Assembly (NCBI GenBank): GCA_002269645.1
Contig: NIVC01000875.1
Location: 186,001-250,000 of the forward strand
Length of the DNA: 64,000 nucleotides
Origin: Macrostomum lignano
Taxonomy: Eukaryota
Direction of reading: 5' to 3'
Shown here one piece after another: positions 720 to 61,288 of the stretch. The stretch's first letter is position 1. The number at the start of each line of letters is the position of its first letter. Below the pieces are notes generated by a model, which was not told the DNA's origin, made no database searches, and was given only the letters and a program-made list of their open reading frames with translations. A program made the translations under genes and the position numbers.

Positions 720-3700
720 CTGTTGGGAAATTTCGAAAGTGAATCAGGATGCGTTGAGCTGCTCGGTAGAATATTGGTATCGCCTGGCAGACAGGCGTAA
801 ATGAGGAGATGCACGGGAGTAACAGCAAGTGGAGGGTTTTGTTGGATTTAGTATACCTTTTTGCAATCAATTTCGTCGTTTTTGCGTTCAATTTCGGCGC
901 GAGCGCTAGTGTGCAGTCTAAACAACTGAGCCATAGACACTGGGCAACTTTTGCGTTCAAATTCGGCCTTTTTGCGTCCTATTTCGGCAGCTTACGGCAT
1001 CAAACATACTTGCGGAGACGACTATAGGCCTGCTTTAGGAGACAAATTTTTCGTCCCACCCTCACTGAATTCGATCGAGTGAGAAAGTGTCTATGGCAAA
1101 AACATTCGAACTGTGCCCACAGTGCGGCCCATGTGATTGCGCTGCCGAAATAGGACGCAAAAAGGCCGAATTTGAACGCAAATGTTGCCCAGTGTCTATG
1201 GCTCAGTTGTTTGGACTGCACACTAGCGCTCGCGCCGAAATTGAACGCAAAAACGACGAAATTGATTGCAAAAAGGTATATTCAGTAACTCAGCTTCCAC
1301 AGAAGCCTCACAGATTCTCAGGAACTCTCTCGAACTCTTTCTGAGTCTGAGCAAACTTCTGCTTTATTAAATCAAATTAAGCACAATTTTTCTTTCCTGG
1401 GCTTGAGGCTGGCGTCTGAGTGCATATTTCTCAAAGTAGGAGACGCATCCTTAGCGTAAGCACAGTAAGTCTGCTTGACAACTGATAAAAAAGCGCAAAA
1501 CTGGTGCCACATCTGCATTAGCATCATATCGCATAGGCATCTAAGGCTAGCCCAGTAACTGTACATTTCTACCTGACGATGAGGAACTCGTGCCCCATCA
1601 GCTCCAGAGCAGACTTTCTGCTTTTGCGGTCCATGGCGGTGCAGCGGCTGTAGAAGTCCTGCAGCTCCTCTGAGCAGCCCGTCGGCAGGGCGGGGGCGCC
1701 GCTGCTTCTCAGCCTTTCGGGCAGCGTGTGAAGCATTTTGTGCTCAGCGAAGGGCCGCCTGCCCGAGACCATCTGGAAGACCGAGCAGCCGAACGCCCAG
1801 ATGTCCGACGCTCTGCTGTACCGCGGGCTGTCCGACTCTTCCGGTGCCAGCAGCTCCGGAGCCAAGAAGCTCAGAGTGCCTTTGGGGGTGGCTTTGGAGT
1901 CCGAGATGTGGGTGACTGACTCCAGCTTGATTGACAGGCCAAAGTCGATCAGCTTGATTCGCGTGTTGTCAGCACAAACAATCATGTTCGAGCAGTTTAT
2001 GTCTCTGTGGATCACGGGCGGCTGCCGGCTGTGCAGGTAGAGCAGCGCGCGGCAGATCTACGAGCGGTCGGTCAGTGAGCAGTCATCATTCATGGAACAT
2101 GGAACAGTAGCATCAAGGATGCACAATGCTCACCTGCTCGCTGAAGTCTCGAATCGTCAGCTCGTCCAGCGGCTTGTTGTTGTCGATGAACCTCCCCAAG
2201 CTTCGGCCGTCCAGCAGCTCCATGAACACAACGACTGTGGCGGGCTCCGGCTGAGCGATGTGCAAGAACCTGACGATGTTGGGATGCTGCAGTTGGCACA
2301 GGTTTCTCTCGCTCTCGACAGCTCTGTGGATCTCTGTGCTCACAGAGGTCAGCTCGTCACCGAGCTGCACAGGCAGTCTGAGAGTCTTGGCAGCGCACGT
2401 GACGCCCGTGTCAGTTCGAACTTCGTGAACTTCGCCGAAGCCACCGCGACCGATGAGGCGAACGGCGTCCCAGCGTTCCAGGAGCGGGGGGCTTTCGAGT
2501 CTGAGGGGATGCGAATTGAGACAATGAGGGAAAATTTGCATGCTGTAGCAGTGTGTGCTGTAGCTGTGTGCTGTAGCTGTGTGCTGTAGCTGTGTGTGCT
2601 GTAGCTGTGTACTGAAGGAACTCACGGCACTGCCAGAGGCTCGTCAAAGTAAATCTTGCCGTCGTACCTAAAAATCCAGTGCGGAGTCTGAGGTCCGGAG
2701 ATATCTTTAATTTTAACAGAGAAAAACAGAAAACTTTCAGCTTTTAAAAAATAACTCAACTGTCACAGAAAACTGCTTGCTGTTGTCTCACAGCTCGCAG
2801 GCAGCTGAACATTAACATTCAACTGGCAATCTGCAGTCAAACTGCACTGCAAACTCCCTCAATGCAGCTCAGTCAGTGTCTGCTGCCCATTTAAACTACA
2901 AAAATAAAAAAATGCCCACTCAGAGCAACTGCAGTCAGCTGCTCAATATTCAATCATAAATTACAGCATGATTTTATCAATGATAAATCAAGGTCAGAGA
3001 GACATTCTCAGTCGCCATGGAAACTCACCCACGCAGCAGCTCGGCCAGTTCGCTCTTTCCGTTCTGTGTGGCCAAATCCAGCGCAGTCCTGCCGTCTCTG
3101 TCCTTCAGGCTCCAATCCGCCCCTGAGTCCAGCAGAACCCGACCGACTGCGGCGGCGGTGTCGGGAGGCGCACTCATGGCTGCTTCCATGAGTGGCGTGG
3201 ATTCACAGCAATCCCTGGCATTGGCGGAGGCTCCGGCAGTCAGCAGAGCGGAGGCTGCGGCAGAATTGCCAGCACCGGCTGCAAGGAGCAGGCAACTGTC
3301 AGCCCATATATTTGCACAGGTGGGGTCACCCAGCTGCACCAGCTGCTCCCACAGAGCCTCATCACCGCACGAGCTGTTCTGAGCTGCCCACATCAACGCG
3401 GTGCGACCCAATTCGTCAGGCAGGTCGCAGCCGTCGCAGGTCGCCGCTCGCCGCAGCCCCGCCGAGTCGCCCGCCTCGGCCAGCCGCCGCAGTTCCTTAC
3501 GATCCGCCTCCTCCTGCAAAGGCGAGCGGGAAATTTGAGCACAGCTGCTCAGCTGCAGCCGCATCGGCACCGCAGATGCCGCTCACCTGGGCTGTCAGGC
3601 CGGAAATCTCGCCGAGTGCATCTACGACCAGCCGCATCTCCCTGCAACAGCAAAAATGAGCAGCGAATTCGCAATTATCTCAAATCCGGCAACTACGATC

Positions 3701-4898
3701 GCAAAAAAAATTCATGATAAATTTAGTAAACAGAGATTTCAAATTATCTGAGCTGCTTGCAGATGGAGTTTCCAAGAGGACTGCAGCAGCTCTGCAACAA
3801 TCAGCATTGGCGAGAGCGCATCCGACTTCTCACACGCAGCTCATTTTCCATTTCTTCAGCATGATTTTCCTTCCACCTCACAATGTCTCACAAAGCACTC
3901 ACGCACAGCCTCCCAGTTCTCCATCTGCAGCTCAACCCACACACTCTTACTGCACACTGAGGCCCTACAGCTTCCATTCTCGACTCAGATCAACCGGCAC
4001 CCCATTGGCTGCGAGGCAGCCAGCCAATCACAGCTCTCGCCCATCAAGCAGTCAGTCAGAGACAAGCTCAGCTGACTGGCTCTGATTGGCTGGCCTGAGA
4101 CTGCAGCTTTGGCCACCCCAGCCGAATGCTGAAAAACTTGATGGACACAGCAGCGAACTGCTCACTCACCGCTCGATGTAGCTGGCCAGCTCTGAGTGGC
4201 CGCTGAGCCTCGCCAGTTCCGACGCCGTCCGACCCTGGCGATCCTTCAGTCCGAGCAGCTCCGACCTCTTCGAGTTTCCGTGCTCCTTGCACTCATTGAA
4301 CCTATCCTGCCTGAGCAGGTGCAGCAGGTGCTTGGCGCATTTCCAGCTTCCAGTCCGCGCCGCCTCCATCAGCGGAGTGGCGCCGTTGTCGTTCTGCAGC
4401 CACTTCGCATCGAACGAAAGCAGCGTCAGCAGCCGCAAGTGGTTACTCCGGGCTGCCAGGTGCGCAGCCGTGTCGCCGTTCGAGTCAGCCGCCCTGGGGT
4501 TCGCGCCCAGCTCAAATAAGTACAAGATGCACTTTTCAGTGTGCACGGGAGTCTCAGGAGCGTCGGCCACCCACATGAGGACGGTCCGACGAGCTGCATC
4601 AGCGCTGGTGACCAGCTGGCGCGTTGCCAGCCGCCGTACCTGGTCGAAGTCACCTTGGATGACGTCATTGGCGAGAGTCTGGAGATCGGCTGGTGAGTCT
4701 CCGACGCTTGCCCGGTTGCTGGGGTCCGGCTGAGTGAGTTCCGTCAACTACAATTGAGGCACCCAAGCTGCACATTCAAACATGTGAGTGAATTCCTGCA
4801 ACTGCAGTCAAGCCTACAAATATATTATGCTTCAATTTGCTCACTTAAACTTTACTTACTCTTTCGTCAGGAAATGATGTTGGCGCTTGCTCTGCCAT
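1..4898 (-). CDS. Gene A: ankyrin-repeat + tandem MAP3K-like protein kinase (3' end runs off the window)
   Basis: Exons with GT-AG borders and matching phases: 4860-4898 (MAEQAPTSFPDER), 4170-4678 (alternative acceptor 4747), 3587-3641, 3029-3513, 2626-2667, 2134-2500, 1573-2057, 362-719, <1-285. Ankyrin motifs (GxTPLMxAA, GRTALDLA) and kinase motifs (GRGGFG, AAK, HRD, DFG, APE). The kinase1-kinase2 join is inferred. Confidence 0.8.
854..1278. mobile_element. MITE (Tc1/mariner-type TA target), 425 bp
   Basis: 138-bp terminal inverted repeats (854-991 and 1141-1278, 2 mismatches), termini TACC...GGTA, TA duplication at 852-853 and 1279-1280. The empty site is visible in gene B (GGATATCA-TA-TTCAGT near 15550). 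Confidence 0.9.
1569..2500 (-). CDS. Gene A kinase domain 1 (STE/MAP3K-like Ser/Thr kinase), split by a 76-nt intron (2058-2133)
   Basis: LIGRGGFGEV, CAAK, ESE, HPNIVRF, HRDINCSN, KLIDFG, GTLSFLAPE, SDIWAFGCSVFQMVSG. Removing the intron joins FSEQ|ICRALLYLH. Confidence 0.92.
3029..4678 (-). CDS. Gene A ankyrin region (block A 4170-4678, linker 3587-3641, block B 3029-3513; about 4-5 repeats per block)
   Basis: NGDTAAHLAA, NGATPLMEAA, QGRTASELA in block A; LGRTALMWAA, ESTPLMEAA, DGRTALDLA in block B. Donors CG|GTGAGT and GG|GTGAGT. Confidence 0.9.
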
Positions 4899-5552: not shown

Positions 5553-5922
5553 CAGATTTGCTGACATAAAGATTTTCAGGGCTGCTGTGGGGCAGGCAGA
5601 TTTGCTGACATAAAGATTGTCAGGGCTGCTGTAGGGCAGATTTGCTGACATAAAGATTGTCAGGGCTGCTGTAGGGCAGATTTGCTGACATAAAGATTGT
5701 CAGGGCTGCTGTAGGGCAGATTTGCTGACATAAAGATTGTCAGGGCTGCTGTAGGGCAGATTTACTGACATAAAGATTGTCAGGGCTGCTGTAGGGCAGA
5801 TTTGCTGACATAAAGATTGTCAGGGCTGCTGTAGGGCAGATTTGCTGACATAAAGATTGTCAGGGCTGCTGTAGGGCAGATTTGCTGACATAAAGATTGT
5901 CAGGGCTGCTGTGGGGCAGATT
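5553..5922. repeat. 40-bp minisatellite, about 9 copies
   Basis: Unit GTAGGGCAGATTTGCTGACATAAAGATTGTCAGGGCTGCT. Confidence 0.95.
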
Positions 5923-6075
5923 TCTGGAAAGAGTAGAAACAGAAAATCTCAGAGAAGAGAGGCTGGAGGTAATCTCTGAAGAGGCATAGACATAAACATT
6001 CATACACATAAGCATAAAAAGGCCTAAACAAAAAGAACCATTAGCGTAAACAAAAATAAATTAAAGATGATTAAA

Positions 6076-7419: not shown

Positions 7420-10400
7420 TGTCTGTATTGATCTGGAAACTCAATTCACGAATCAGAGTCCTTCGTATAACTTTGAATGCTCAGATATCAAAATGATTTT
7501 TTGAAATGAATTTCAATCTGATTTTTTCACTATTTACGAGCGTAAACTGAATAAAAATGTGAGAGACTTGAAAAAAGCGTTTTTTTGTAGAGGCTAAAAA
7601 TGCTTTGTCGTCAAGGTAACAAAAACGACGCCTTTTGTGTGAGTGTTGTGTTCTCAGACCTCTCTGAGTGTGTGCTCATGCTCATGGTCAGGACTAAAGC
7701 TCACTCGCTACTCCATCAATCGGCTGTCTCCACAGATGCCGAATGGATGGAGAAGCTGCAACTCAATTGGCAGCTTCACGAGGCCTCTAATGCAGCGTGC
7801 AGTGTTGAGAGCAGTTTTTTTGTCAGCCACTCAATGAATTTTCTGCCTAATCTGGGGGATGGGATTTTCGTGGGATTTGGGATAATAGGGAAAGTTTTTT
7901 TGCTCACGACTTGCCAGCATCCGAAGGTGTTGCTGATGACGAATAGAACTGAATTTTGCTCCTGCAATGCATGCAGAGAGACTTGAAAATCCTCAACTCC
8001 AGGTCGCTAGAAGGTCATGTCTGTACTCAGTCTTCAGAACAACTAATTTATTGCTTTGCCTCAAACAGCTGATGGCCTCTGTATTCACTTCTGTCTCAAG
8101 ACTCTGCCACTAAGCGGAATTCAAGAGTGAGTACAGGTGCGCTTCTCAGGACTGAAGCTTTATGCTTGTACTGGCTTATTCTCGCCAACAATGATAGGCA
8201 TTGTAGTTCAGACTGTCCCTCTGCTCTCAGGCTCATTGGCCTTTTTGTCTAGTCTTCTTTCAAGCAAAAGAAGAAGCATCGACGCATCGACAACGTGAAA
8301 GACATGCGACATGTTTTCATTTCTGCGAGCATAAGAATGGTTTCAAACTTAAACAGTCTAATAGTCTAAACATACCAGAAGAAGGGGCAGAGCAGCTATG
8401 TGGTAAACTCGTCTGGCTCACGTGCCGTGACACGTTTGATTACGAAGACTTGCTGAGACATATCATATTTTAGGTCCACAGATCTCAAAAAAACGTTTAA
8501 CAAAACTGACTCGATTCAAATCGAATGCAGGTCTTTTCTAGTTGCTAGGCAGGTCTTGGGCTCGATACGCGCTCAGCGGCAGCCTGTTTGTTGCAACTAC
8601 GCTCGTAGTTTCCATTGAATTGGCTGCAGGGCGGGCCGAGGACACGGCCATTCCACTAATTCAGGGGCAAACTACAGGCCGCTCTACCCGGCCCACAATA
8701 ACACTCCGGCCCGCTCAAGGTTTGTGTCTCTTCTCAGCTCTCTCCTCTCTAATCTCATCCCCCTTTTCTCTCTCTCCTTCCCTCCTCTCTCCCTCTCTTC
8801 TCTCCCTTCTTTATTCTACTCTCCTATCTCTTCTCTCCACCCTTTCCTCTCCGTTCTCTCATCTCCCTTCTCTCCTTTCCCTTCTTTTCTCACCTCCCCT
8901 TTTCTCTCCTCCCCTTCGCTTCTCTCGTCTCGTCTCTCTTCTCTTCTCTCATCTCCCTTCTCTTCTCTCCTTTCCTCTCCCTTCTCTCCTCTCCCTTCCC
9001 TTCTCTCCTTTCCTCTCCCTTCTCTCGTCTCTCTTTTCTTCTCTCCTCTCCCTTCTCTTCTCTGCTCTCCCTTCTCTCCTCTCCTCTCCTCTCTCCTCTC
9101 CTTTCTCTCCTCTCCCTTCTCTCCTCTCCTCTCTCCTCTCCCTTCTCTCCTCTCCCTTCTCTCCTCTCCTCTCCTCTCTCCTCCCCCTTCTCTCCTGTCC
9201 TCTCCCTTATCTTCTCTTCTCCCCTTCTTTTCTCTCCTATCTCCTCTTATCTCTCCTCCTAATGCACTCCTCTCTCCCGCCCGCAGGCATGCGCTAGATT
9301 CTCCATCAGGCACTTCAGGTAAAAGTTTTTAAACCCTGCACTAAACCCTGAAAAGCCCAGAGACAGAGGCTCGTCTTTTGGCCCCGAGAAACTCGGGCCA
9401 GCCGGCATCGTCTGCGGACGGGTTGGGTTCGAGGTAGTGGAGTCGGTCTCGGTTGAAGGCTCGGCAGAGGCAGACGAAGTGCAGCTTGGCATCTTCGTTT
9501 TCAAGGTTGCAGAAGGGCCAGAGTAGGTTCTATTTTTTGATTTAGTATAAATTTTAATTATAAATATAAGTGTTTCTAATTTTAATACTTTTTTCTACGT
9601 CAGGTTCCTGAAAGTGCGTCATGTCAGCATTTTTCCTCTACGGTCTGGCTTCCGACGTCCACGAGGACTCAAGCTTGACTGTGTTGTATTTCGCTCTTTT
9701 GAGGGCCGTAAGAGGTCTCAAGTCTATGGCATTGAAGTATGGTCCTGTATGGCACTGCATACAGTGTTCCCAGTGGTCCTTGCCAAAGCCATGTGCAGGT
9801 GCTGCTGCTGGCGCTGCTTATGGAGGAGTCTGGAAACATCTCTAATCCAAACACACTGAAGCTGTAAGATTCCAATCCAGCAGAAGATCGACATTCAAGT
9901 GTCTTTTTCATCTCGCGATATAAAGTGTTTTTATTACACACCTCACTCATTGTACCTTTCTCATTTTCTTCACACCCACTCAGACTCCAAACTTTGTTAC
10001 TGAAAACGTCTTCTTGCTTTGGGATGTGAGAGTTTTCGAAGCCGCCTTTGTTAAAGCATTCTATGAATACGTTTGATAATGTGTGTATTTAGCGCTGGTG
10101 GTTTCATGACAAACCGCAGACAGAACAGCCCATAATGAGCAACAAATGCAAAGATCTTCACCATTAATACAGGAACATTTGCCTGAAGAGTGAAGAGTAT
10201 AATTTATCTAAGCAGGGAGTCACTTTTACTGCACTATCGAATAGCAATGAGATCGCATAGATAAGCGAGCAAAGTGCAAGGTATGCAGCATGTTCGGCTG
10301 GCAAAATCCTCGCTATAAAACTTTTACAGACTAAATTTGGATCAGGCTTCGCGCTTATATACAGCATAGATTTTAAGACAATGAACTTCAATAGAATGAG

Positions 10401-10919: not shown

Positions 10920-11100
10920 TGAGAAGACAGTGTCTGAGAGATGCACTGCCTGCACCTGATTGGCTGAATGCGAGCCCGGTGCCTCGGTCTCGGACTCTCC
11001 TTTATACGGAACGCATACTACTTATGGCAGTAGAGGTTTGAGTGCAGACTTGCAGAGTCGAGTGGGCAGTGAAAAAATGCAGAGATGAGAGAGGTGGAGA
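10920..11100 (-). promoter_or_regulatory. Orphan type II promoter remnant (no gene downstream)
   Basis: Homologous to 31245-31420 and 47905-48040; CCAAT retained, TATA degraded at the junction. Confidence 0.55.
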
Positions 11101-11139
11101 ATGATTTGATGTGAAAATACTGGTATACTTGAGAGTAGC

Positions 11140-11745
11140 AGATGGAATATGCAGAGAGAATATGCAGAGAGAATATGCAGATAGAATATGCAGATAGAAT
11201 ATGCAGATAGAATATGCAGATAGAATATGCAGAGAGAATATGCAGAGAGAATATGCAGATGGAATATGCAGAGAGAAAATGCAGATAGAATATGCAGATA
11301 GAATATGCAGAGAGAATATGCAGATAGAAAATGCAGAGAGAATATGCAGAGAGAATATGCAGATGGAATATGCAGAGAGAAAATGCAGATAGAATATGCA
11401 GATGGAATATGCAGAGAGAAAATGCAGATAGAATATGCAGATGGAATATGCAGAGAGAAAATGCAGATAGAAAATGCAGATAGAATATACAGAGAGAATA
11501 TGCAGATAGAATATGCAGATAGAATATGCAGATAGAATATGCAGATGGAATATGCAGAGAGAATATGCAGATGGAATATGCAGATGGAATATGCAGATAG
11601 AATATGCAGATGGAATATGCAGATAGAATATGCAGATAGAATATGCAGATAGAATATGCAGATAGAATATGCAGATAGAATATGCAGATAGAATATGCAG
11701 ATGGAATATGCAGATAGAATATGCAGATAGAATATGCAGATAGAA
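11140..11745. repeat. 13/14-bp minisatellite (ATAGAATATGCAG)
   Basis: Direct tandem units; the paralogous array at 31455-31890 has unit ATAGAACATCCAG. Confidence 0.95.
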
Positions 11746-11808
11746 TTCACTGCGGTTTGTGTCCGGTTCAATTCATTGGTCTATGTCGATTGGCATAATT
11801 TTTATCCT

Positions 11809-12262
11809 TAGAATCTCCCAGCATCTCAGAATCTCCCAGCATCTCAGAATCTCCCAGCATCTCAGAATCTCCCAGCATCTCAGAATCTCCCAGCATCTCA
11901 GAATCTCCCAGCATCTCAGAATCTCCCAGCATCTCAGAATCTCCCAGCATCTCAGAATCTCCAAGCATCTCAGAATCTCCCAGCATCTCAGAATCTCCCA
12001 GCATCTCAGAATCTCCCAGCATCTCAGAATCTCCCAGCATCTCAGAATCTCCCAGCATCTCAGAATCTCCAAGCATCTCAGAATCTCCCAGCATCTCAGA
12101 ATCTCCCAGCATCTCAGAATCTCCCAGCATCTCAGAATCTCCCAGCATCTCAGAATCTCCCAGCATCTCAGAATCTCCAAGCATCTCAGAATCTCCCAGC
12201 ATCTCAGAATCTCCCAGCATCTCAGAATCTCCCAGCATCTCAGAATCTCCCAGCATCTGAGA
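11809..12262. repeat. 18-bp minisatellite (AGAATCTCCCAGCATCTC), about 25 copies
   Basis: Direct tandem units; paralog at 33545-34512. Confidence 0.95.
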
Positions 12263-13348
12263 ATTCGGCACTCTAAAAAAACAAAGAAACTCTCACATCA
12301 AACTTTCTCAGTTTTTTTTATTTCAACAAAAATAAGCGACTCAAGCACTCGATGTGCTGATAGTAGCATGACGCGGAGCCAGCTTGGTGTGCAGAATTAA
12401 GGAGAATTTTTAGTATATGGATATGAAAATTGAAATAGATTGAAAAACCGAAATGGCTGTCTGGTGACACAAAATTAAAAGTTTTCAGTAAAAATGTTTC
12501 AATAATTTAAGCGTATTTGTCTGAGCACTCTCAATCAGCCCTTCCCTGAGCTATATCAGACGCAGCTCACTTTAAAGCCAAGCTCTTTAGCTAAAAATTA
12601 ATTCTAAAATGAGAAAATGCTTAATCATGACCACATGCAAAGCACGCAGGCAGCAAAGGTTGGCTGAACAGCACTATGACGTGATTCTTGAACTTTCCGC
12701 TGCAGTCAAACTGCCTCACTGTGAGTTCCGCAACCAACAGAAGATTTTTATCATAACCCAAAGCTTTCAAAGCTCGCACAGCTGCTCAAAATTAGTAAAC
12801 AGCTAAACAGCTTATTATGCAGCTCTCCTGTCCCGTGCTGCTTTTGATCTTGACGTCAGTGTCAGCTGATTCTTGGGGCTGCATGGCTGCCTGCTCTCAG
12901 GTGAGCTTTCCGCGACTCTCTTATCGGGAAGACCTTGCTCGATCTAAGCTCAGGTGCAGCCTCGGTGGCTCCACTTATCTTGCTTTTCTACAGTTGTCTG
13001 CCTTGAGGTGCGGCCTGTGGCACTTTTGCCCTTTTTGGTCTGTCCTTGCAGCGAATCTGAAGCTCTTGTTTGGTCATCTTTCGAAAAGATTTGAATAAAC
13101 TTTTGCTTTTGCAAGCAAAACACTTCGGAGGGTTTTTGAGAAGCCTGGCAATTGTGCATCATGATGAAGTGAAACTTTTGTGCTGCAATGCATCCGAATT
13201 CAACTGTAAGGGCTTTGCTTTCAGCCAATGCGAGCGCTCAGCCGGAAAAGCTGAGGACACGAACCCTGCCTCAGCCAGTGAATGAACTCTAATGTACAAG
13301 TAAATTATTGCTCTCCTTCCCCATTTCTCCATCAGATCCCTGAGCCAG

Positions 13349-14482: not shown

Positions 14483-15423
14483 TTAGTGCTGTGAGTCAGA
14501 CTTTTTCCTCAAGAACTCGTGCTCCAACAGCTTTTCTGCCGAGTGTCTCTCACTGCGGTCCTTGGCGGTGCAGCGGCTGTAGAAATCCTGAAACTCTGCG
14601 GACCGGCCCTCCGGCAGGGCGGGGGCGCCCCTCCTGTAAAGATCAAGTGCCATTTCCCAGAAGTTTTTTACTTTTGAGAACGGTTTGGTACCGGAGGCCA
14701 TCTGGAAGACCGAGCAGCCGAACGCCCAGATGTCCGACTCTCTGCTGTACTGCTCGCATTCCGAGGTGCCGATTCCGAGCAGCTCTGGCGCCATGAAGCT
14801 CAAAGTACCTTTCAATGACTCGGGAAAAGCTGAGTGGCGACTGACTGACTGCTCTAGCTTGATCGACAGGCCGAAGTCGATCAGCTTGATTCGCGTGTTG
14901 TCAGCACAAACAATTATGTTCGAGCAGTTGATGTCTCTGTGGATCACGGGCGGCTGCCGGCTGTGCAGGTAGAGCAGCGTGCAGCAGATCTACGAGCGGT
15001 TGGTCAGTGAGCAGTCATCATTCATGGAACATGGAACAGTAGCATCAAGGATGCACAATGCTCACCTGCTCGCTGAAGTCTCGAATCGTCAGCTCGTCGA
15101 GCGGCTTGTTGTTGTCGATGAACCTCTCCAAGCTTCGGCCGTCCAGCAGCTCCATGAACACAACGACTGTGGCGGGCTCCGGCTGAGCGATGTGCAAGAA
15201 CCTGACGATGTTGGGATGCCGCAGTCGGCACAGGTTTTTCTCGCTCTCGACAGCTCTGTGGATCTCTGTGCTCACAGAGATTTGGTCATCACCGAGCTGC
15301 ACAGGCAGTCTGAGAGTCTTGGCGGTGCACCTGATGCCTCTGTCGGTGACAACTTCCTGGATGTCACCAAAGCATCCTCTTGCAACGAACCGAGTGGAGT
15401 CCCAGCTCTTCCTGAAAATGGAG
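14483..15423 (-). CDS. Gene B kinase domain 2 (altered glycine loop ARGCFG)
   Basis: FVARGCFGDIQEV, TAK, HRDINCSN, DFG, GTLSFMAPE; intron 14990-15065; stop at 14483-14485. Confidence 0.9.
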
Positions 15424-18400
15424 CTGTTGGGAACATTGGAAAGCGACTCAGAAAGCGTTGAGCTGCTATTCAGACTTTTTGCATTGCCTGACAGACAGAC
15501 TAAAATTAGGGGATGCACGGGCGTCACTGCAGTTGGAGGATTTTGTCGGATATCATATTCAGTAAAACGCATCTGACACAGCAGCCCCACAGATTCCCAG
15601 GAACTCCCTCGAACTGTCTACGTCTGAGCAGGGATTTCGCTTTATCAATGCAGTATAGGCACAATTTTATTTTTCTGAGGTTCAAGCTAACACCTCTCAA
15701 TGCTCACTGCTCAATTTAGGTGGCGCATCTTTAGCGTGAGCACAGTGAGCCCGCATGACTGGTTATAAAACAATGCAACTCCGTTCTCACCTATGCATTA
15801 GCATCATATCGCATAGGCATCTAAGGCTAGCCCAGTAACTGTACATTTCTACCTGACGATGAGGAACTCGTGCCCCATCAGCTCCAGTGCAGACTTTCTG
15901 CTTTTGCGGTCCATGGCGGTGCAGCGGCTGTAGAAGTCTTGCAGCTCCACTGAGCAGCCCGTCGGCAGGGCGGGGGCGCCGCTGCTTCTCAGCCTTTCGG
16001 GCAGCGTGTGAAGCATTTTGTGCTCAGCGAAGGGCCGCCTGCCCGAGACCATCTGGAAGACCGAGCAGCCGAACGCCCAGATATCCGACTCTCTGCTGTA
16101 CCGCGGGCTGTCCGACTCTTCCGGTGCCAGCAGCTCCGGAGCCAAGAAGTTCAGAGTGCCTTCGGGGGTGGCTTTGGAGGCTGAGATGTGGCTGACTGAC
16201 TGCTCCAGCTTGACTGACAGGCCAAAGTCGATCAGCTTGATTCGCGTGTTGTCAGCACAAACAATTATGTTCGAGCAGTTGATGTCTCTGTGGATCACGG
16301 GCGGCTGCCGGCTGTGCAGGTAAAGCAGCGCGCGGCAGATCTACGAGCGGTCGGTCAGTGAGCAGTCATCATTCATGGAACATGGAACTGGAGCATCAAG
16401 GATGCACAATGCTCACCTGCTCGCTGAAGTCTCGAATCGTCAGCTCGTCCAGCGGCTTGTTGTCGATAAACCTCCCCAAGCTTCGGCCGTCCAGCAGCTC
16501 CATGAATACAACGACTGTGGCGGGCTTCGGCTGAGCGATGTGCAAGAATCTGACGATGTTGGGATGCTGCAGTCGGCACAGGTTTTTCTCGCTCTCGACA
16601 GCTCTGTGGATCTCTGTGCTCACAGAGGTTTGGTCATCACCGAGCTGCACAGGCAGTCTGAGAGTCTTGGCAGCGCACGTGACGCCCGTGTCAGTTCGAA
16701 CTTCCTGGACTTCGCCGAAGCCTCCTCGGCCGATGAGGCGAACGGCGTCCCAGCGCTTCAGGAACGGAGGACCTTCGGGTCTGAGGGAATGCGAATTGAA
16801 GCAATGAGGGATAATTTGCATGCTGTAGCTGTCTGTGCTGTAGCTGTGTGCTGTTGCTGTGTGCTGTAGCTGTGTGTTGTAGCTGTGTGTGCTGTAGCTG
16901 TGTGTGCTGTAGCTGTGTGCTGTAGCTGTGTGCTGTAGCTGTGTGCTGTAGCTGTGTGTGCTGTAGCTGTGTGCTGTAGCTGTGTGTGCTGTAGCTGTGT
17001 GTGCTGAAGGAACTCACGGCGGTGCCAGAGACTCCTCGAAGTAAATCTTGCCGTCGTACCTAAATAGGCAGTGCGGAGTCTGAAGTCAAGAGGGAATTCA
17101 GTTGAGAGCCCATGCTCTGTGCTTCATTTCTTCATTTTGTTTTAATTAACTATGAAACAGATTTCATTAATACTTTTGTTTTATTGTAAAAAATGATATT
17201 AGCAGAAAAGCACAAAAAATTTCAGATGTTGAAATTAAACTCAACTGTCACAGCAAAATGTTTGCTGGTGTCTCACAGCTCGCAGGCAGCTGAACATTAA
17301 TATTCAACTGGCAATCTGCAGTCAAACTGCACTGCAAACTCCCTCAATGCAGCTCAGTCAGTGTCTGCTGCCCATTTAAACTACAAAAATGTTAAAATGC
17401 CCACTCAGAGCAACTGCAGTCAGCTGCTCAATATTCAATCATAAAGTACAGCATGATTTTATCAATGATAAATCAAAGTCAGAGAGACATTCTCAGTCGC
17501 CATGGAAACTCACCCACGCAGCAGCTCAGCCAGTTCGATATTTCCCTTCTGTGTGGCCAAATACAGCGCAGTCCTGCCGTCTCTGGTCTTCAGGTTCCAA
17601 TCCGCCCCTGAGTCCAGCAGAACCCGACCCACTGCGGCGGCGGTGTCGGGGGGCGCAATGATGGCTGCCAGCATGAGGGGCGTGAATTCAGCCCGACCCC
17701 TGGCATTGGCGGAGGCTCCGGAAGCCAGCAGAGCGGAGGATGCGGCAGAATTGCCAGCCTCGGCTGCCCAGTGCAGGCAACTTGTAGCCCATATGGTCGC
17801 ACAGGTGGGGTCACCCAGCAGCACCAGCTGCTCCCACAGAGCCTCATCTCCGCACGAGCTGTTCTCAGCAGCCCACGTCAACGCAGTGCGACCCTCATGG
17901 TCAGGCAGGTCGCAGCTGCCGCGGGTCACCGCTCGCCGCAGCCCCGCCGAGTCGCCCGCCTTGGCCAGCCGCCGCAGTTCCTGTCGATCTGCCTCCTCCT
18001 GCAAAAGCGAGCGGGAAATTTGAGCACAGCTGCTCAGCTGCAGCCGCATCGGCACCGCAGATGCCGCTCACCTGGTCTGTCAGACCGGAGATCCTGCCAG
18101 ATGCATCCACAAGCAGCCACATCTCCCTGCAACAGCAAAAATGAGCAGCGAATTTCCAATTTTCTCAAATCCGACAACTACGATCGCCAAAATAAATATT
18201 TATGATAAATTTAGTAAGCAGAATAAATTCCTAACTATCTGAGCTGCTCGCAGATGGAGTTTCCAAGAGAACTGCAGCAGCTCTGCGACAATCAGCATTG
18301 AGAGCGCATCCGACTTCTCATACGCAGCTCATTTTCCATTTCTGCAGCATGAGTTTCCTTCCATCTCACAATGTCTCCAAAAAAGCACGTACGCACAGTC

Positions 18401-24200: not shown

Positions 24201-24954
24201 TGTCGCAACGCCATTACTCATAAGCTAGCCTGGGAGAGCACTGCTCTGCTGATCTCTTCCTGCTTGTCAGCCCACACGCATGCAGCTCTCCACTCTCTCC
24301 TGTTGCAGCCCCAAGCCCTCCCACAATACGCTGGGCTGGAAGACAAACTTGCAAACTGGTCTCTCCCTAAAATTCTACTCATCTCTTAATCTCTCAGCAG
24401 CTGTTTCTTTATTTCTCCGGCACAGAACTTCCTTGTCTTAGAGAGCTGTGGCTATGAGTAGGATAAGCCGCAATAGGAAAGCTTGGGGGTTGCGGTGGGA
24501 GCAGGGAGGCGTGGGGAGAAAAGCAGTGGCGGGTCGAAGTCGCTACAGCCGCCTATGAGTCTTTGAAGGACCCCGCATTTACAGCGAGTGTCCATCGAAT
24601 CCTCTTTTCTCCTGCTCCTTCTAAACCCCTTCTTTCTGAAAAAGCAATGGTTTTGTCTACCGCAAATCACACACGGTTTTACCAGATTCACCGGCATGCA
24701 AAAGCAGCACAGAGACTGGCAAATGCGCGCAGACCAGCATGCAACAGGAGTTCATTGAGCCCAGCAGACTTTGAGCAAATGCAGGCAGCTGGAGAGTCGG
24801 AGCAGTGCGAGTTGCTGGTTCACTCTGGAGCCGAGCACAACCACGTGACTTTGAATATGCACTTTTAAAGTACATGATGTACATTGCAGCCATAGCGATT
24901 GGCTGCGATGGGTTCAAAACTTTGACTTATGGGAGCCACTGATGGCTGTGAGGG

Positions 24955-25576
24955 CTGGGTGTCTGAGTGCTGGGTGTCTGAGTGCTGGGTGTCTGAGTGC
25001 TGGGTGTCTGAGTGCTGGGTGTCTGAGTGCTGGGTGTCTGAGTGCTGGGTGTCTGAGTGCTGGGTGTCTGAGTGCTGGGTGTCTGAGTGCTGGGTGTCTG
25101 AGTGCTGGGTGTCTGAGTGCTGGGTGTCTGAGTGCTGGGTGTCTGAGTGCTGGGTGTCTGAGTGCTGGGTGTCTGAGTGCTGGGTGTCTGAGTGCTGGGT
25201 GTCTGAGTGCTGGGTGTCTGAGTGCTGGGTGTCTGAGTGCTGGGTGTCTGAGTGCTGGGTGTCTGAGTGCTGGGTGTCTGAGTGCTGGGTGTCTGAGTGC
25301 TGGGTGTCTGAGTGCTGGGTGTCTGAGTGCTGGGTGTCTGAGTGCTGGGTGTCTGAGTGCTGGGTGTCTGAGTGCTGGGTGTCTGAGTGCTGGGTGTCTG
25401 AGTGCTGGGTGTCTGAGTGCTGGGTGTCTGAGTGCTGGGTGTCTGAGTGCTGGGTGTCTGAGTGCTGGGTGTCTGAGTGCTGGGTTTCTGAGTGCTGGGT
25501 GTCTGAGTGCTGGGTGTCTGAGTGCTGGGTGTCTGAGTGCTGGGTGTCTGAGTGCTGGGTGTCTGAGTGCTGGGTG
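24955..25576. repeat. 15-bp minisatellite (CTGGGTGTCTGAGTG), about 41 copies
   Basis: Almost perfectly homogeneous tandem array. Confidence 0.97.
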
Positions 25577-27694
25577 TTGGCTTGGGAACTGTTTTTCATA
25601 TCTTGGGTAGCAGCGGTCGGTGTATCTCTTGCGTAGGTAAATTCGGGAATCCCACCGGCCTCCAGGTGCGCCAGGAATGCCGATTTCATGGCCTGATGGT
25701 AATGCCACTCGGGCTGGCAACTGGCAGCGGCTTCACTTGACCTCTCCAGGCGCTTCTGCTGAGATGCCGCCGCCCGTCACGTGACCCGCTGGGCTCGCTC
25801 TGAGCTGAGGTGAGTAGGATCAGCTCGGCTACCCTCAGGGGCTAAAGAGCTGATGGCTCCGGAATCGATCCCGGACCGCCGGGCCTGCGCCAATCCGCCT
25901 GTGCGATGGGACTGGGAGTTCACTGCGTTGGTGCCGGTTGCTCAGTGATGTCATTGCTTTTATGGCACTGGACTTCAAACTCCTGCATCTGCAAATCCAG
26001 CTGCCACAATGGCATATTTGGCAAAACTCTTCTCTGCCGTATTTTTAAACTTCATATTTAATTATTAGAGTCTCACTGCATTTCTTGAATTAATTGAGCA
26101 ACTGCCCAGTACCAAATGCTTTAGCCCAAGCATTGCCTTGGGAATTCAGTAACGAATGCTTTGCTAAAAGCTCCGTCTGTCCCAGGCACAGTATTGATTA
26201 TGCAGGCTGTGCAGCACAGAGCGGCTCCTAACGCGGGGAGAGCCGATCGCCACGCCAGTCAGGCGGCAATTTCTCAGCGAAGCCAAGCTGGGGCTGGGAA
26301 ATCCTGCTGGTGGCTGTCTGGGGGCATTGGAGAGGAGTTGAGCACGGGCTCTTGTATACTGCTGTATGGGAGGCTCTGCTCCCGAGTTGGAGTTGACAGA
26401 GCGAGCCAAGCTGGCCAGCTGCAGAGCTGAGCAGCTCAGTTGGGCAGGGGTGGAGGCTTAAGGAAAGGGTTTGAGAAGCAGGATTCGCTGTGTGGGATCT
26501 CACACTCTTTGAAGTCTCAGAGCCAGTGGGCTAGGAAGAGCCGTCTGAGAAACTGGATTGGGGAAATGGCTCTCGTATTTCTTCCGTGAATTTCTGTTTG
26601 GAAGTCGTGCGAATGTAAGTGCCTCACGCTGAGTGCTTCTCATAGAGTGCTTCTCCCGGAGTGCTTCTCCCTGAGTGCCTCTTTCTAAGTGTTTCCCCAC
26701 GGAGTGATGTCATTCATAGGCTACATTAATTGAATTAATTTTACACATTGATTCAACAAGCATTATTGCATTTCACACAGATCGACTCAGACAACTCATT
26801 AAACTATGCGGGAAAACTAAGCGAAATCTTCATAGGCCAAGAGATTTGTCCCGAAAGCCAGCTGAAGGAAAATATGAATGATACCCATTAAGGCGCTTAC
26901 CTCTCGTGTATGTATCTCTCTCTGCAGCTCCATCGACTCTCTCTGCAGCTGCCATTATAGCATCTCGCTCTCCTACTCCCTGAATTTCATTTCCATTTTT
27001 ATCAGCAGTTGAGTTCAACAAACACGGCAGCCACTCAGTGCTGATAGTCGGGCAGTTCCGGTATGCTAGAGAGTCACACACGAGTATATTTGAGTAATTC
27101 GTCACAAAGCTCACAAAAAAGCGACAGCAGCAGATGGCAAATAGCAGAGCTTGAGTACAGATTGGCATTTGAGCAGCTCAAGGGAGGGCAGAGTGTAAAA
27201 GAGTGGTGGGGCAGAGAAAACAGAGGCGGTAACGCCTGCGGTGCAGATAAACAAAATGAGTTCAAAATGAGTAAATTTCCTGGGTGCACCTGGCACTCAG
27301 TCTCAGGCGGAATTGAAGCAGTCACAGCCTGTGTATGCGGGATATTCATCAGAGAGTTCATTGATAAATGATGGGAAATTTGGGAGAACTCAAGACAAGG
27401 AAAAAATGTACAACAAAGTCCAATAGAAAAACGACGGCGTAAGATCAGCTTAAAATAAAAATTTTCAGCAAAAACAAAGCTTCATCAAGCAAAATAATGA
27501 TAGACACTTCTCAAGCCGCATCGAATTCAGAGAAATCCCCACCCAGTCTCTGCACAGCAAGGAAAGCAGTCTAAGCTAATCCTGGCGTGAGCAAAAATGG
27601 TTTGCTAGGTCTCATTTTTAGCCGCATTTCAGTTGAGTTGAAGATGATGATGATGGGGTGGATGGTGGCAAACCAACAACCAACTCATCTTCTG

Positions 27695-28615: not shown

Positions 28616-31151
28616 CTGAGGGGATGCGAATTGAGGCAATGAGGAATAATTTGCATGCTGTAGCTGTGTGTGCTGTAGCTGTGTGCTGTAGCTGTGTGTG
28701 CTGTAGCTGTGTGCTGTAGCTGTGTGTGCTGTAGCTGTGTGCTGTAGCTGTGTGCTGTAGCTGTGTGTGGTGTAGCTGTGTGTGCTGTAGCTGTGTGTGC
28801 TGTAGCTGTGTGTGGTGTAGCTGTGTTTGCTGTAGCTGTGTGTGCTGTAGCTGTGTGCTGTAGCTGTGTGTGCTGTAGCTGTGTGTGCTTTAGCTGTGTG
28901 TGCTGTAGCTGTGTGTGCTGTAGCTGTGTGTGCTGTAGCTGTGTGTGCTTTAGCTGTGTGTGCTGTAGCTGTGTGTGCTGTAGCAAACTCACAGGGACTC
29001 ATCGAAGTAGATCACTCCTTCAAATGCTTGCTGGTGTCTCACAGCTTGCAGGCAGCTGAACATTAATATTCAACTGGCAATCTGCAGTCACACTGCACTG
29101 CAAACTCCCTCAATGCAGCTCAGTCAGTGTCTGCTGCCCATTTAAACTAAAAAAATATAAAAATGCCCACTCAGAGCAACTGCAGTCAGCTGCTCAATAT
29201 TCAATCGTAAATTACAGCATAATGTTTATCAATGATAAATCAAAGTCAGAGAGACATTCTCAGTCGCCATGGAAACTCACCCACGCAGCAGCTCCGCCAG
29301 TTCGCTCTTTCCGTGCTGTGTGGCCAAATCCAGCGCAGTCCTGCCCCGCATGTCCTTCAGGCTCCAATCCGCCCCTGAGTCCAGCAGAACCCGACCGAAT
29401 TCGGCGGCGGTGGCGGGGGGCGCATTGATGGCTGCAAGCATGAGGGGCGTGCATTTACTCCAATCTTCCCTGGCATTGGCGGAGGCTCCGGCAGCCAGCA
29501 GAGCGGAGGCTGAGGCAGAATTGCCTGCCTTGGCTGCACGGTGCAGGCAACTTTCAGCTAATATAGTCGCACATGTGGGGTCACCCAGCTGCACCAGCTG
29601 CTCCCACAGAGCCTCATCACCGCATGAGCTGTTCTGAGCTGCCCACATCAATGCGGTGCGACCCCAGTCGTTAGGCAGGTCGCAGCTGTCGCGGGTCGCC
29701 GTTCGCCGCAGCCCCGCTGAGTTGCCCAGCTCGGCCAGCCGCTGCAGTTCCTGTCGATCCGCCTCCTCCTGCAAAAGCGAGTGGGAAATTTGAGCACAGC
29801 TGCTCACAACCAGCCGCATCGGCACTGCAGATGCCGCTCACCTGGGCTGTCAGACCGGAGATCCTGCCATTTGCATCCACAACCAGCCGCATCTCCCTGC
29901 AACAGTAGAAATGAGCAGCGAATTTTCAATTCTCACAAATTAAAAAGAATTTAAAAATTAAATTTTCAGATGGACGAAAGAATTTTCATACTAAATTTAG
30001 TAAACAGAAATTCATAATTATCTGAGCTGCTCGCAGATGGAGTTTCCAAGAGGACTGCAGCAGCTCTGCAACAATCAGCATTGGCGAGAGCGCATCCGAC
30101 TTCTCACACGCAGCTCATTTTTCATTTCTGCAGCATGAGTTTCCTCCATCCCACAATGTCTCACAAAGAACTCACGCACAGCCTCCCAGTTCTCCTCAAC
30201 CCACACAATCTCACTGCACACCGAGGCCCTACAGCTTCCATGTTCGACTGAGATCAACCGGCACCCCATTGGCTGGGAGGCAGCCAGCCAATCACAGCTC
30301 TCGCTCATCAAGCAGTCAGTCAGAGACAAGCTCAGCTGACTGGCTCTGATTGGCTGGCCTGAGACTGCAGCTCTGGCCACCATAGCCAGCCGAATGCTGC
30401 AAAACTTGATGGACACAGCAGCGAACTGCTCACTCACCGCTCGATGTAGCTTGCCAGCTCTGAGTGGCCGCTGAGCCTCGCCAGGTCCGACGCCGTCCGA
30501 CCCTCGCGATTCTTCAGTCCGAGCAGCCGCGACCTTTTCGAGTTTCCGTGCTTAATGCACTCATTAAACCTCCACAGCCTGAGCAGGTGCAGCAGGTGCT
30601 TGGCGCATTTCCAGCTTCCAGTCCGCGCCGCCTCCATCAGCGGAGTGGCGCCGTCGTCGTTCCGCAGCCACTTCGCATCGAACGACAGCAGCGTCAGCAG
30701 CCGCAGGTGGTCCCGCCGGGCTGCCAGGTGCGCAGCCGTGTCGCCGTTCGCGTCAGCCGCCTTGGGGTTCGCGCCCAGCTCAAATAAGTACAAGATGCAC
30801 TTTGCTGTCTGCACGGGAGTCTCAGGAGCGTCGGCCACCAGCATGAGGACGGTCCGACGAGCTGCTTCAGCGCTGGTGACCAGCTGGCGCGTTGCCAGCC
30901 GCCGCACCTCTCCGAAGTCACCTCGGATGACGTCGTGGGCGAGAGTCTGGAGATCGGCTGGTGAGCCACCGATGCTTACCCGGTTGTTGGGGTCCGGCCT
31001 AGTGAGTTCCTGCAACTGCAATTGAGGTTCCCAAGCTTTACATAAGGAAGTAAGGGCAAAGGAATAAGCTTATTCATTTACTACTTGAAGGTTTAGAGAC
31101 AAGTATAATATTTTAATAAAAATACTTTACTTTAGAGGCTTCACCTTCCAT
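27695..31151 (-). CDS. Gene C: ankyrin repeats + single MAP3K-like kinase (about 638 aa, linker mini-exon probably skipped)
   Basis: Exons 31131-31151 (MEGEASK, least certain), 30438-30946, 29842-29896, 29281-29768, 28258-28615 and 27695-28180 are frame-consistent; ends HEFLTCG*. Confidence 0.8.
29281..30946 (-). CDS. Gene C ankyrin region
   Basis: Ankyrin motifs as in the paralogs; block B is one codon longer (EDWSKCT). Confidence 0.9.
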
Positions 31152-31890: not shown

Positions 31891-32712
31891 ACAGAAGACC
31901 AAGGATTCTCTTTGTCCGAATGCGGTTGCAGCCATAGACATGAAAGGTTCGGACTTCTTAAGCCCTCCAACAGAAGCCCTTCGGGCCTCAGAGCAAATAA
32001 ATTAGTCACTCAATGCTTTGCCCCTCACTCCTGTCAGATGGCCAGCCCCAGGGCAGCTGAGATGTGGCCAGCAGAGCACCGCAGGCGCTGTGGTTAAGAG
32101 AAGACAGCAAGAGACCAGCAGGGAGAGCAGCTCACCAAAGCAGCTCTTATGAAGTCGGGTTTCCGACTAGACGTGGCTCTGAACTGCCCTAACTCGTGTC
32201 TTTTGGCTGTCGATCTCGAAGTCACGGCTCATTACAGGGACACTGCTGGGACCGGATCGCATTGACCATGCAGGGACAGAGAGGACTTCTGTGTCCTTCC
32301 TGAGGGTCTAAGCTGGGTCGCTGGCAAGTCTCTTTACATGGAAGAATGTACTATTATTGTACTATTATTGAATAAAACAACTCCAACAAATGGCCACCGC
32401 ATTTCCAATAAAATCGGCAGTCCAATGCTTCAGCTGTCCAAGACGCTTTCAACTCGTCGAAGCGTCCACCAGATGACATCGCCCACGTAGTCTGCCCGAG
32501 ACAGACCTCTGCCGTCATTGCTTGCCTTCAGTTGGACTATGGAACTTCTGCTACTCCTATTTCTGGCTGCACTGGTGCCCTCTAAGGACAGCACATCCAG
32601 TTAATGGATGCAAACCGTGTGCTCATTTCTGACTGCAATATTTTTATTTCTCGCTGCATTCGAGACTGAGTCTCTGAGAGTTAAGACAGCAGCCTGGCAG
32701 CAGACAGAAGCC

Positions 32713-33525
32713 TCTATTCACTGGTTTGTGTCCTGTTCTATTCACTGGTTTGTGTCCGCTTCTATTCACTGGTTTGTTTCCGGTTCTATTCACTGGTTTG
32801 TGTCCGGTTCAATTCATTGGTCTGTGTCCTGTTCTATTCACTGGTTTGTGTCCGGTTCTATTCACTGGTTTGTGTCCGGTTCTATTCACTGGTTTGTATC
32901 CGGTTCTATTCACTGGTTTGTGTCCGGTTCTATTCACTGGTTTGTGTCCGCTTCTATTCACTGGTTTGTTTCCGGTTCTATTCACTGGTTTGTGTCCGGT
33001 TCAATTCATTGGTCTGTGTCCGGTTCTATTCACTGGTTTGTGTCCGGTTCAATTCATTGGTCTGTGTCCAGTTCTATTCACTGGTTGGTGTCCGGTTCTA
33101 TTCACTGGTTTGTGTCCGGTTCAATTCATTGGTCTGTGTCCAGTTCTATTCACTGGTTGGTGTCCGGTTCTATTCACTGGTTTGTGTCCGGTTCTATTCA
33201 CTGGTTTGTGTCCGGTTCTATTCACTGGTTTGTGTCCGGTTCTATTCACTGGTTTGTGTCCGGTTCTATTCACTGGTTTGTGTCCGGTTCTATTCACTGG
33301 TTTGTGTCCGGTTCTATTCACTGGTTTGTGTCCAGTTCTATTCACTGGTTGGTGTCCGGTTCTATTCACTGGTTTGTGTCCGGTTCTATTCACTGGTTTG
33401 TGTCCGGTTCTATTCACTGGTTTGTGTCCGGTTCTATTCACTGGTTTGTGTCCGGTTCTATTCACTGGTTTGTGTCCGGTTCTATTCACTGGTTTGTGTC
33501 CGGTTCTATTCACTGGTCTGTGTCG
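32713..33525. repeat. 21-bp minisatellite (TTCTATTCACTGGTTTGTGTCCGG-like), about 38 copies
   Basis: Direct tandem units; only about 2 units at the paralogous site 11745-11790. Confidence 0.95.
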
Positions 33526-33544
33526 ATTTCAAGAATTTTCATCC

Positions 33545-34512: not shown

Positions 34513-35187
34513 ACGATTAGAGTTTTGCACTCATTTAAAGCAAAATACGAGCAAAATTAATTTCTCAGATCCATTTTCGGCTTCAAATTCAAACAAAAAT
34601 AAGCACCGTTAGCTTTAATGAGTCCTGACAGTAGTATAAAATGGAACCAATGGAATCATGATCACATTCAAGGCGCAAAAGCAGCAAAGGTTGGCTGAAC
34701 AGCACTATGGCGCGATTCTTGAACTTTCAGAACTTGCAGTTACGAGTAAAAAGCCTCACTGTGAGCTCCGCAACCAACTGACAGTGTTTATCTTATCACA
34801 GTTGCTTTCGGCCTTGACGTCAGTGTCAGCTGACTCTTGGGCTGAACGCTGCTTTTCTCAAGGATCTCCGCGACTCTCTTATCGGGAAGACCTTTGGTCT
34901 GAGCTCCGGTGCACTCAGTGGCTCCAATTCTTTCTACAGTGTTTGCCTTGAAGTGCGGCCTGTGGCACTTTTTCCATTTTCGGTCTGGCCTCGCTGCGAA
35001 TCTGAAGCTCTTGTTTGGTCATCGTCTTCGTGAGACACCTCACTGGCACCCCAGTGTCCAGTTCGACCTCCGCCTGCCTCGGTCAGATGACATGCTCAGC
35101 CAGGCATTTGAACCAAATGCGAGCGTACATTTTAGGGTGCCCAGGCTAAGCCTTGATCCTACGCCCGACCTGCTCATGGATCTGATA

Positions 35188-49560: not shown

Positions 49561-49614
49561 GTCGACAAAGATCTTCCAACCGAACTCCGCATCAGCACCG
49601 AACTCCCAGCAGCA

Positions 49615-61215: not shown

Positions 61216-61288
<73 letters not shown>

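Follow-up and report, generated by a model that had tools for sequence, protein, structure and literature searches.

In the ankyrin repeats of Podospora NOD-like receptors (NLRs; NOD, nucleotide-binding oligomerization domain), the sites under positive selection occupy, on the concave face, the inner helices and the β-hairpin/loop (Dyrka et al. 2014, PMC4986451). Fungal NLRs make multigene families with swappable effector domains, recombination adds to their diversity, and their internal repeats are at least 85% identical (PMC4986451). These receptors are the closest precedent that we found for the genes described here, which are located in a window of 64 kb (the whole stretch of DNA that was analysed, positions 186,001 to 250,000 of contig NIVC01000875.1) from the flatworm Macrostomum lignano. 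Comparison of the window with itself reveals a gene of ∼3.5 kb that is present on the minus strand in five tandem copies (A to E); each of the five encodes two ankyrin blocks, A and B, and a MAP3K-like kinase.

As in the fungal NLRs, positive selection in block B acts on concave-face ankyrin positions, and the family is multigene, with alternative effectors and recombination. The differences are as follows. Neither the Pfam domains of the window proteins nor the precomputed lists of domains for family members include a NACHT or NB-ARC domain. Block B repeats, with insertions in repeats 1 and 3, are 22–42% identical to one another, versus at least 85% in the fungal proteins. The number of repeats does not change among the 16 copies of the block B exon (exon 4) that we examined, and the variation is between paralogous animal genes. 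In the Macrostomum family the ankyrin module is joined directly to a kinase or a caspase.

Positions within a repeat are numbered here as in designed ankyrin repeat proteins (DARPins), reportedly after Binz et al. 2003; the set randomised in DARPin libraries is said to include positions 2, 3, 5, 13, 14 and 33. In DARPins, defined surface positions form the paratope (PMC8683736). In size and fold block B corresponds to an N3C DARPin, and its fastest codons are at five of the six randomised positions. Unlike a library, it is natural and encoded in the germline by paralogs, it keeps position 33 conserved and uses positions 1 and 10, and its repeats are not consensus-like and are fused to a second ankyrin block and an effector.

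Solenoid-repeat immune receptors with hypervariable concave faces are also represented by the leucine-rich repeats (LRRs) of plant NLRs and by the variable lymphocyte receptors (VLRs) of lampreys. Block B shares with them a conserved scaffold, hypervariable exposed contact positions, tandem clusters and sequence exchange; it differs in having an ankyrin rather than an LRR fold, in the lack of a NOD domain and in showing no evidence of somatic assembly. Within flatworms, ANK-caspases, made of an N-terminal ankyrin pro-domain and a caspase, have been called unique to parasitic species, and no hypervariability of their ankyrin face was reported (PMC11463336). The same architecture is present in about ten M. 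lignano paralogs of the family, whereas in the window genes the effector is a MAP3K-like kinase; the likeness to the Schistosoma pro-domain is, so far, one of architecture. Our search of the literature on M. lignano and ankyrin found no paper describing this family, and we found none on an animal family with the ankyrin binding face as the hypervariable element.

Diversifying selection on ankyrin block B

Strong positive diversifying selection between paralogs acts on the tips of the β-hairpins and on the face of the inner helices in block B. The sample consisted of 16 copies of exon 4, five from the window and 11 from seven M. lignano contigs encoding paralogs. The reading frame is open in 15 of them, the AG/GTGAGT splice sites are conserved, and the alignment contains only four short indels, all in frame (multiples of 3), with length differences of 1–5 codons. 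Codon models were fitted with our own likelihood program (the GY94 codon model with F3x4 frequencies), given a neighbour-joining tree, with branch lengths fixed in proportion from model M0 and with naive empirical Bayes posteriors. The M0 estimate of omega (dN/dS) was 1.23; twice the log-likelihood difference (2ΔlnL) was 267 for M1a versus M2a and 301 for M7 versus M8, with about 15% of codons at omega≈7.2.

Posterior probability was >0.95 for 18 codons, every one of which lies in a β-hairpin or an inner helix. Of these, 15 occupy positions 2, 3, 5, 13 and 14 (Fisher P = 7e-13 versus the six-position DARPin set and 2e-14 for these five positions), the other three fall on positions 1 and 10, and there are none elsewhere; Trp, Arg, Phe, Ile, Lys and His are enriched at the selected sites. 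When each repeat was given a tree of its own as a control for recombination, the statistics of the likelihood-ratio test (LRT) were 27, 114, 99 and 16 for repeats 1–4 and 1.1 for the N-terminal cap, and the same sites were picked. The preliminary description of this DNA had proposed diversifying selection, for ligand specificity, at the positions randomised in DARPin libraries. The selection itself is borne out by the site models, by the per-repeat trees and by the location of the sites on the binding face; as to the positions, the proposal holds for 2, 3, 5, 13 and 14 but not for position 33, which is conserved (proportion of non-synonymous differences, pN, of 0.078; two residue types per repeat), while positions 1 and 10 are variable.

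Measures that use no tree give the same picture. At the DARPin positions, defined a priori, pN is 0.39 compared with a proportion of synonymous differences (pS) of 0.126 in the scaffold, a ratio of 3.1 (bootstrap 95% confidence interval 2.3–4.1); among the window copies, pN is 0.32 at these positions versus 0.078 in the rest of the exon. Taken position by position, pN is 0.28–0.57 at positions 2, 3, 5, 13 and 14 and ≤0.1 at most scaffold positions. The mean pN over these five face positions, 0.44 (uncorrected), is higher than the pS of the exon (0.12) in all 120 pairs of copies, and face pN is higher than intron divergence (0.20–0.25) in 103–112 of the 120, with a median ratio of 2.1–2.5; for the window copies only, face pN is 0.36 versus 0.07–0.10. 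Thus, face pN exceeds both synonymous and intronic divergence, and the outcome which the preliminary description had named as contrary to its proposal, variable sites spread at random over the structure with a dN/dS of at most 1 and divergence matching them, was not observed. Each of the 16 copies has a unique combination of face residues.

For whole exons, dN/dS by the method of Nei and Gojobori (NG86) is 0.83–1.50 per pair (mean 1.14), which cannot be told from neutrality, so that a partition by site is needed. Within the window, divergence between copies is 0.10–0.14 for exon 4 and 0.03–0.05 for the adjacent introns; this contrast alone is no proof, because the low intron values are partly due to recent conversion or duplication tracts, such as the one shared by A and E downstream of about 3100. 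A per-site fit in the manner of fixed effects likelihood (FEL), which has little power with 16 sequences, gave only 14 sites with β>α at P<0.1.

The ankyrin register was fixed by two independent means. When aligned to ankyrin-1/2 by HMMER, TSCLHWAAEAG matches TALHIAALAG and EFTPLMLAA matches GFTPLYMAA; in an AlphaFold2 model of block B (the copy-B equivalent, with a mean confidence score, pLDDT, of 93.7) helices are paired in each repeat, and the first helix of each repeat corresponds to positions 7–13/14. The selected sites were placed by the repeat register, the secondary structure of the model and the ankyrin-1/2 alignment, not by 3D coordinates. The top Foldseek matches of the model are DARPin structures, several of them DARPin-target complexes (template-modelling score about 0.8, 30–33% identity). 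As modelled, block B forms an ankyrin domain of its own, made of five repeats, with the size and shape of a DARPin. In Pfam searches exon 4 was recognised as Ank_2 (E = 8e-19 to 8e-23) and Ank (E≈1e-14 to 1e-15) in copies A, B and C, with E = 8e-19 for Ank_2 in copy A.

In the five-way protein alignment we recovered all of the variable strings that had been quoted for exon 4. The hairpin strings (in the order A/B/C/D/E) are DEL/DHE/NDW/DDE/DHE, NIWAD/TIWAT/TILAE/NRWTT/AI*AV, DCCEST/GRAEFT/EDWSKCT/GQWEFP/DQWEFT and DRD/TRD/DMR/DGH/DRD; those of the inner helix are LLLAAG/LHWAAE/LHRAAK/LHRAAK/LHWAAM and MEAAMS/MLAAII/MLAAIN/MQAAIW/MLAAII. These strings fall on ankyrin positions 1–5 (the β-hairpin) and 10, 13 and 14 (one face of helix 1). 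The scaffold segments NSSCGDEALWEQLV, GASANAR and VLLDSGADW are, as described earlier, invariant in all five copies. In an alignment of 24 family members the variable columns hold 7 to 9 or more residue types, and most scaffold columns 1–3.

Block A, the kinase and exchange between copies

Block A had been described as far more conserved than block B. This is true of its length as a whole, with a tree length of 1.63 substitutions per codon versus 4.10 (2.5-fold less), an M0 omega of 0.72 versus 1.23 and conserved hairpins, but not uniformly: a small hypervariable loop, RQ[D]RFNEC[KE], is located between repeats (4283-4306 in copy A). For block A, 2ΔlnL of M1a versus M2a was 95, with a positively selected class of ∼4% of sites at omega≈10, and the selected sites are confined to this loop and to two extreme N-terminal residues (4709-4720 in copy A).

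The kinase domain is under purifying selection, as are block A apart from these sites and the scaffold of block B. Exon 7, analysed at the same loci and with the same program as exon 4, gave omega = 0.22 and LRT = 0; thus, the method creates no signal in these mosaic genes, and the genes are under purifying selection.

The mosaic structure of the copies is seen, for instance, between A and E, which diverge by 0–2% from about 3100 through the kinase and the 3′ flank and by 10–17% over repeats 1–3 of exon 4, repeat 4 being identical. Copies A and D are identical across the hypervariable loop of block A, where other pairs are 9–16% different. Across the 16 copies of exon 4 the nearest neighbour of a copy changes from repeat to repeat, and for non-adjacent repeats the distance matrices are uncorrelated (Mantel r from −0.11 to 0.18). 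Selected point substitution is thus combined with gene conversion or unequal exchange of repeat-sized cassettes.

Interpretation and alternative explanations

Judging from the sequences, we consider that block B is probably the target-recognition surface of a germline receptor repertoire, with face positions 1, 2, 3, 5, 10, 13 and 14 diversified by selection together with segmental exchange; we would give this reading a probability of about 0.6. In such a repertoire the block B of each paralog would bind a different or fast-changing protein partner, and binding would be relayed through the constant block A to the kinase or caspase. The proteins would be cytosolic, with a pair of ankyrin modules followed by an effector. 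In every window gene this effector is a MAP3K-like kinase; paralogs have a caspase or an SH3 domain in its place, or lack an effector. Exchange of repeat-sized segments re-assorts the variable hairpins between paralogs. The most likely role would be the sensing of non-self or selfish-element proteins, with a stress-kinase or cell-death output.

Several points weigh against this reading. The receptor role of the family is drawn only from its architecture and the pattern of selection. None of the database proteins retrieved is identical to the window proteins, the best match to block B being 88% (P0018 versus copy C), which suggests copies missing from those protein sets, another assembly or a very close relative. 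Copy E carries a stop codon in exon 4, a TGA in place of the Trp codon of the other copies at position 3 of repeat 2, which makes it probably a pseudogene or null allele; other unusual changes in this copy affect the scaffold (P to L, R to C and C to F), and its kinase exons are intact and almost the same as those of copy A. The catalytic activity of the kinase is uncertain, because its catalytic loop HRDINCSN (about 1990-2013 in copy A) has Asn in place of the usual HRDxK Lys of Ser/Thr kinases; this loop is found in every aligned exon-7 copy except L2 (YRDINCSN), and the kinase may be atypical or a pseudokinase.

As to the evidence for selection, the codon models are our own implementation rather than PAML or HyPhy. 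Recombination inflates the LRTs of site models, and recombination among the paralogs is evident here. In the FEL-like fit the synonymous rate is raised at the hypervariable codons (mean α of 6.6 versus 1.8, a noisy estimate), so that part of the excess could be due to older or faster-mutating cassettes rather than to omega>1 everywhere. The NG86 pS within these codons is raised too, at 0.22–0.35; this could come from repeated non-synonymous turnover via six-fold degenerate residues or from older cassettes escaping homogenisation, and a codon-precise mutational bias may contribute.

A serious, if rather unlikely, alternative is that the selection is real but that the face tracks a diversified endogenous partner (paralog-specific substrates or inhibitors, allorecognition, or reproductive and sexual-conflict proteins in this hermaphrodite), with no sensing of pathogens or selfish elements. 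The pattern of selection does not identify its driver, and the restriction of the family to Macrostomum in the databases searched would suit such a partner, as would the allorecognition function of those fungal ankyrin and WD40 NLRs that bear this signature (PMC4986451). However, the window revealed no co-diversified family of partners, and effectors such as a MAP3K-like kinase and a caspase typically belong to stress and cell-death signalling. The lack of an apparent signal peptide at the N-terminus of the copy A protein (the sequence was read by eye, with no predictor) makes a secreted reproductive role unlikely.

Less probable still is that the high omega is an artefact, with gene conversion or a locally raised mutation rate in the hairpins producing clustered multi-nucleotide differences that single-tree models misread. 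The LRT remains significant repeat by repeat with a separate tree for each, face pN computed without a tree is above exon pS and intron divergence, and the kinase exon of the same genes gives no signal, whereas the clear mosaic structure of the copies and the raised synonymous rates and pS at hypervariable codons count in favour of an artefact. At the conserved codons that lie among the variable ones (positions 4, 6, 7, 8, 9, 11 and 12) pS is 0.07–0.29, on average about 0.16; this is well under the face pN of 0.28–0.57 and argues that there is no regional mutation hotspot. To our knowledge, no mutational process targets a 33-residue periodic codon set defined by a 3D surface.

Relaxed constraint alone, with exposed positions drifting at omega≈1 in redundant recent duplicates, could account for whole-exon values near 1 (NG86 1.14, M0 1.23) and for a probable pseudogene, copy E, but it is refuted by the present data and has very little probability left, since M1a, which allows omega = 1, is rejected (2ΔlnL = 267), face pN (uncorrected for multiple hits) is 3–5 times pS and about 2–2.5 times intron divergence, 15 of the 16 copies are open with indels in frame only, and the rest of exon 4 and the kinase are constrained.

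Two further candidates were rejected: an alignment artefact, given that exon 4 aligns with just four short in-frame indels, and a set of dead pseudogenes, given the 15 open frames and the constrained kinase.

Gene models, family members and other features of the window

Coordinates of the gene and exon models and of the repeats of block B are listed in Table 1. Exon 4 of copy A is bounded exactly by an AG acceptor and a GTGAGT donor. In-frame gene models were obtained for copies A and B and, except for the TGA in exon 4, also for copy E. Copy C has no recognisable counterpart of the 42-nt exon 5 (about 28987-29022), the skipping of which would preserve the frame. The 5′ end of exon 2 in copy D is divergent and 35 nt shorter (47130-47672). 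Exon 1 is strongly different between the copies, the N-terminus of copy B being a PPK-repeat.

Table 1. Coordinates in the window of the copy A gene model, of exon 4 in copies B to E and of the segments of block B in copy A
Feature	Coordinates	Strand	Basis and remarks
Copy A, whole gene	1569-4898	−	Seven exons, 684 amino acids; ATG at 4898, stop at 1569-1571; uninterrupted reading frame
Copy A, exon 1	4898-4860	−	Gene model
Copy A, exon 2 (ankyrin block A)	4170-4747	−	Pfam; codon models; hairpins conserved
Copy A, exon 3 (linker between blocks A and B, 55 nt)	3587-3641	−	Gene model, in frame
Copy A, exon 4 (ankyrin block B, 161 codons + 2 nt)	3029-3513	−	Translation; splice sites; Pfam Ank_2
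Copy A, exon 5 (42 nt)	2667-2626	−	Gene model
Copy A, exon 6 (kinase)	2134-2500	−	Pfam Pkinase
Copy A, exon 7 (kinase)	1569-2057	−	Pfam Pkinase; omega = 0.22
Copy B, exon 4	17514-17998	−	Intact; splice sites, alignment
Copy C, exon 4	29281-29768	−	Intact, one extra codon (+3 nt) in repeat-3 hairpin; splice sites, alignment
Copy D, exon 4	45979-46463	−	Intact; alignment
Copy E, exon 4	57478-57962	−	In-frame TGA at 57753-57755; alignment
Block B, N-terminal cap-like degenerate repeat (residues 1-32)	3418-3513	−	Helices 2-14, 17-23 and 26-29 in the model; LRT of the segment 1.1, no sign of positive selection
Block B, repeat 1	3313-3417	−	Selected: E34 (3412-3414), L35 (3409-3411), R37 (3403-3405), i.e. 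positions 2, 3, 5
Block B, repeat 2	3214-3312	−	Selected: I69 (3307-3309), W70 (3304-3306), D72 (3298-3300), L77 (3283-3285), G80 (3274-3276), i.e. positions 2, 3, 5, 10, 13
Block B, repeat 3	3103-3213	−	Selected: D101 (3211-3213), C102 (3208-3210), C103 (3205-3207), S105 (3199-3201), E110 (3184-3186), M113 (3175-3177), S114 (3172-3174), i.e. positions 1, 2, 3, 5, 10, 13, 14
Block B, repeat 4 (C-terminal)	3031-3102	−	Selected: R139 (3097-3099), D140 (3094-3096), N151 (3061-3063), i.e. positions 2, 3, 14

The kinase of copy A was detected as Pfam Pkinase (E = 1e-26), and its closest sequences in PDB are MAP3K2 (9e-28), WNK1/3 and ASK1/MAP3K5; the motifs GRGGFGE, AAK (the β3 Lys), HRD, DFG and APE are present. 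Two lineages of the kinase domain are swapped between the copies, A, B and E versus C and D, with a difference of ∼41–43% over 1666-1765; the regions concerned are 2262-2361 and 1616-1765 (copy A coordinates) and the equivalents in C and D. Copy C alone has a divergent kinase segment, LRTDQNETEKKKINEVIESE, which resembles the kinase-only copies. The swapped lineages and this segment point to gene conversion among kinase units. Kinase-only partial copies, without ankyrin exons, are located on the minus strand just downstream of A, B and E (1-960, 14483-15590 and 54217-55400, respectively), and in a database protein of 985 amino acids (P0001) the ankyrin module is merged with several kinase domains. 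Some loci may encode tandem-kinase proteins, or the kinase-only copies may be partial duplicates.

Database searches yielded 57 related M. lignano protein clusters, with the architectures ANK+kinase, ANK+caspase, ANK+SH3 and ANK-only. Two database searches yielded M. lignano proteins and, after these, generic ankyrin proteins with 25–38% identity; at E ≤ 1e-10 no protein from outside Macrostomum was retrieved except for two generic ankyrin proteins. In the databases searched, the multigene family is so far known only from Macrostomum. The C-terminal domain of the window genes is a kinase and not a Peptidase_C14 caspase. The caspase domain (PF00656) is found in about ten predicted paralogs of this free-living species (P0025, P0026, P0038, P0039, P0042, P0044, P0049, P0051, P0053 and P0056; locus L006), and the ankyrin module of P0026 is 67–73% identical to those of kinase-type members.

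The window is eukaryotic in character, with short GT-AG introns, microsatellite arrays and a retroelement. The latter is the coding region of a Ty3/gypsy-type long-terminal-repeat retrotransposon between copies D and E (48361-51991, plus strand), with three consecutive open reading frames (ORFs) that encode, in order, a gag zinc knuckle and an aspartic protease, a reverse transcriptase and RNase H, and an integrase. Mini- and microsatellite arrays between the gene copies (5580-5960, 8540-9330, 11020-12400, 24865-25720, 32600-34600, 38226-38980, 40970-42470 and 42660-43240) yield long spurious ORFs in several frames. At its end the window shows a flip in GC skew (−0.70 to +0.53), which is due to a low-complexity, CT-rich inverted duplication of 1.5 kb (60251-61759 and 62476-63999, 98.8% identity).

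Implications

A repeat protein with its contact surface under diversifying selection bears the hallmark of a recognition receptor, as known from the LRRs of plant NLRs, the VLRs of lampreys and the WD40, ankyrin and TPR repeats of fungal NLRs. If block B is, as we think, the target-recognition surface of a germline repertoire, one may go a step further and suppose, tentatively, that Macrostomum has an ankyrin-based system of germline variable receptors without a NOD domain and with interchangeable kinase/caspase effectors, its diversity arising from positive selection and the shuffling of cassettes in tandem arrays, an animal counterpart of the plant and fungal NLR repertoires that would serve innate immunity or the control of selfish elements. 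M. lignano is a model species tractable to transgenesis and RNA interference, and direct testing of the recognition hypothesis is feasible in it.

Were the recognition role true, these genes would represent a natural experiment in the binding space of the DARPin scaffold, including positions 1 and 10 and an insertion in the hairpin, and the flatworm ANK-caspases could be seen as a single effector variant within a broader family of candidate receptors. Flatworms would then possess cytosolic sensors of a class so far unrecognised, coupled to a stress kinase or a caspase.

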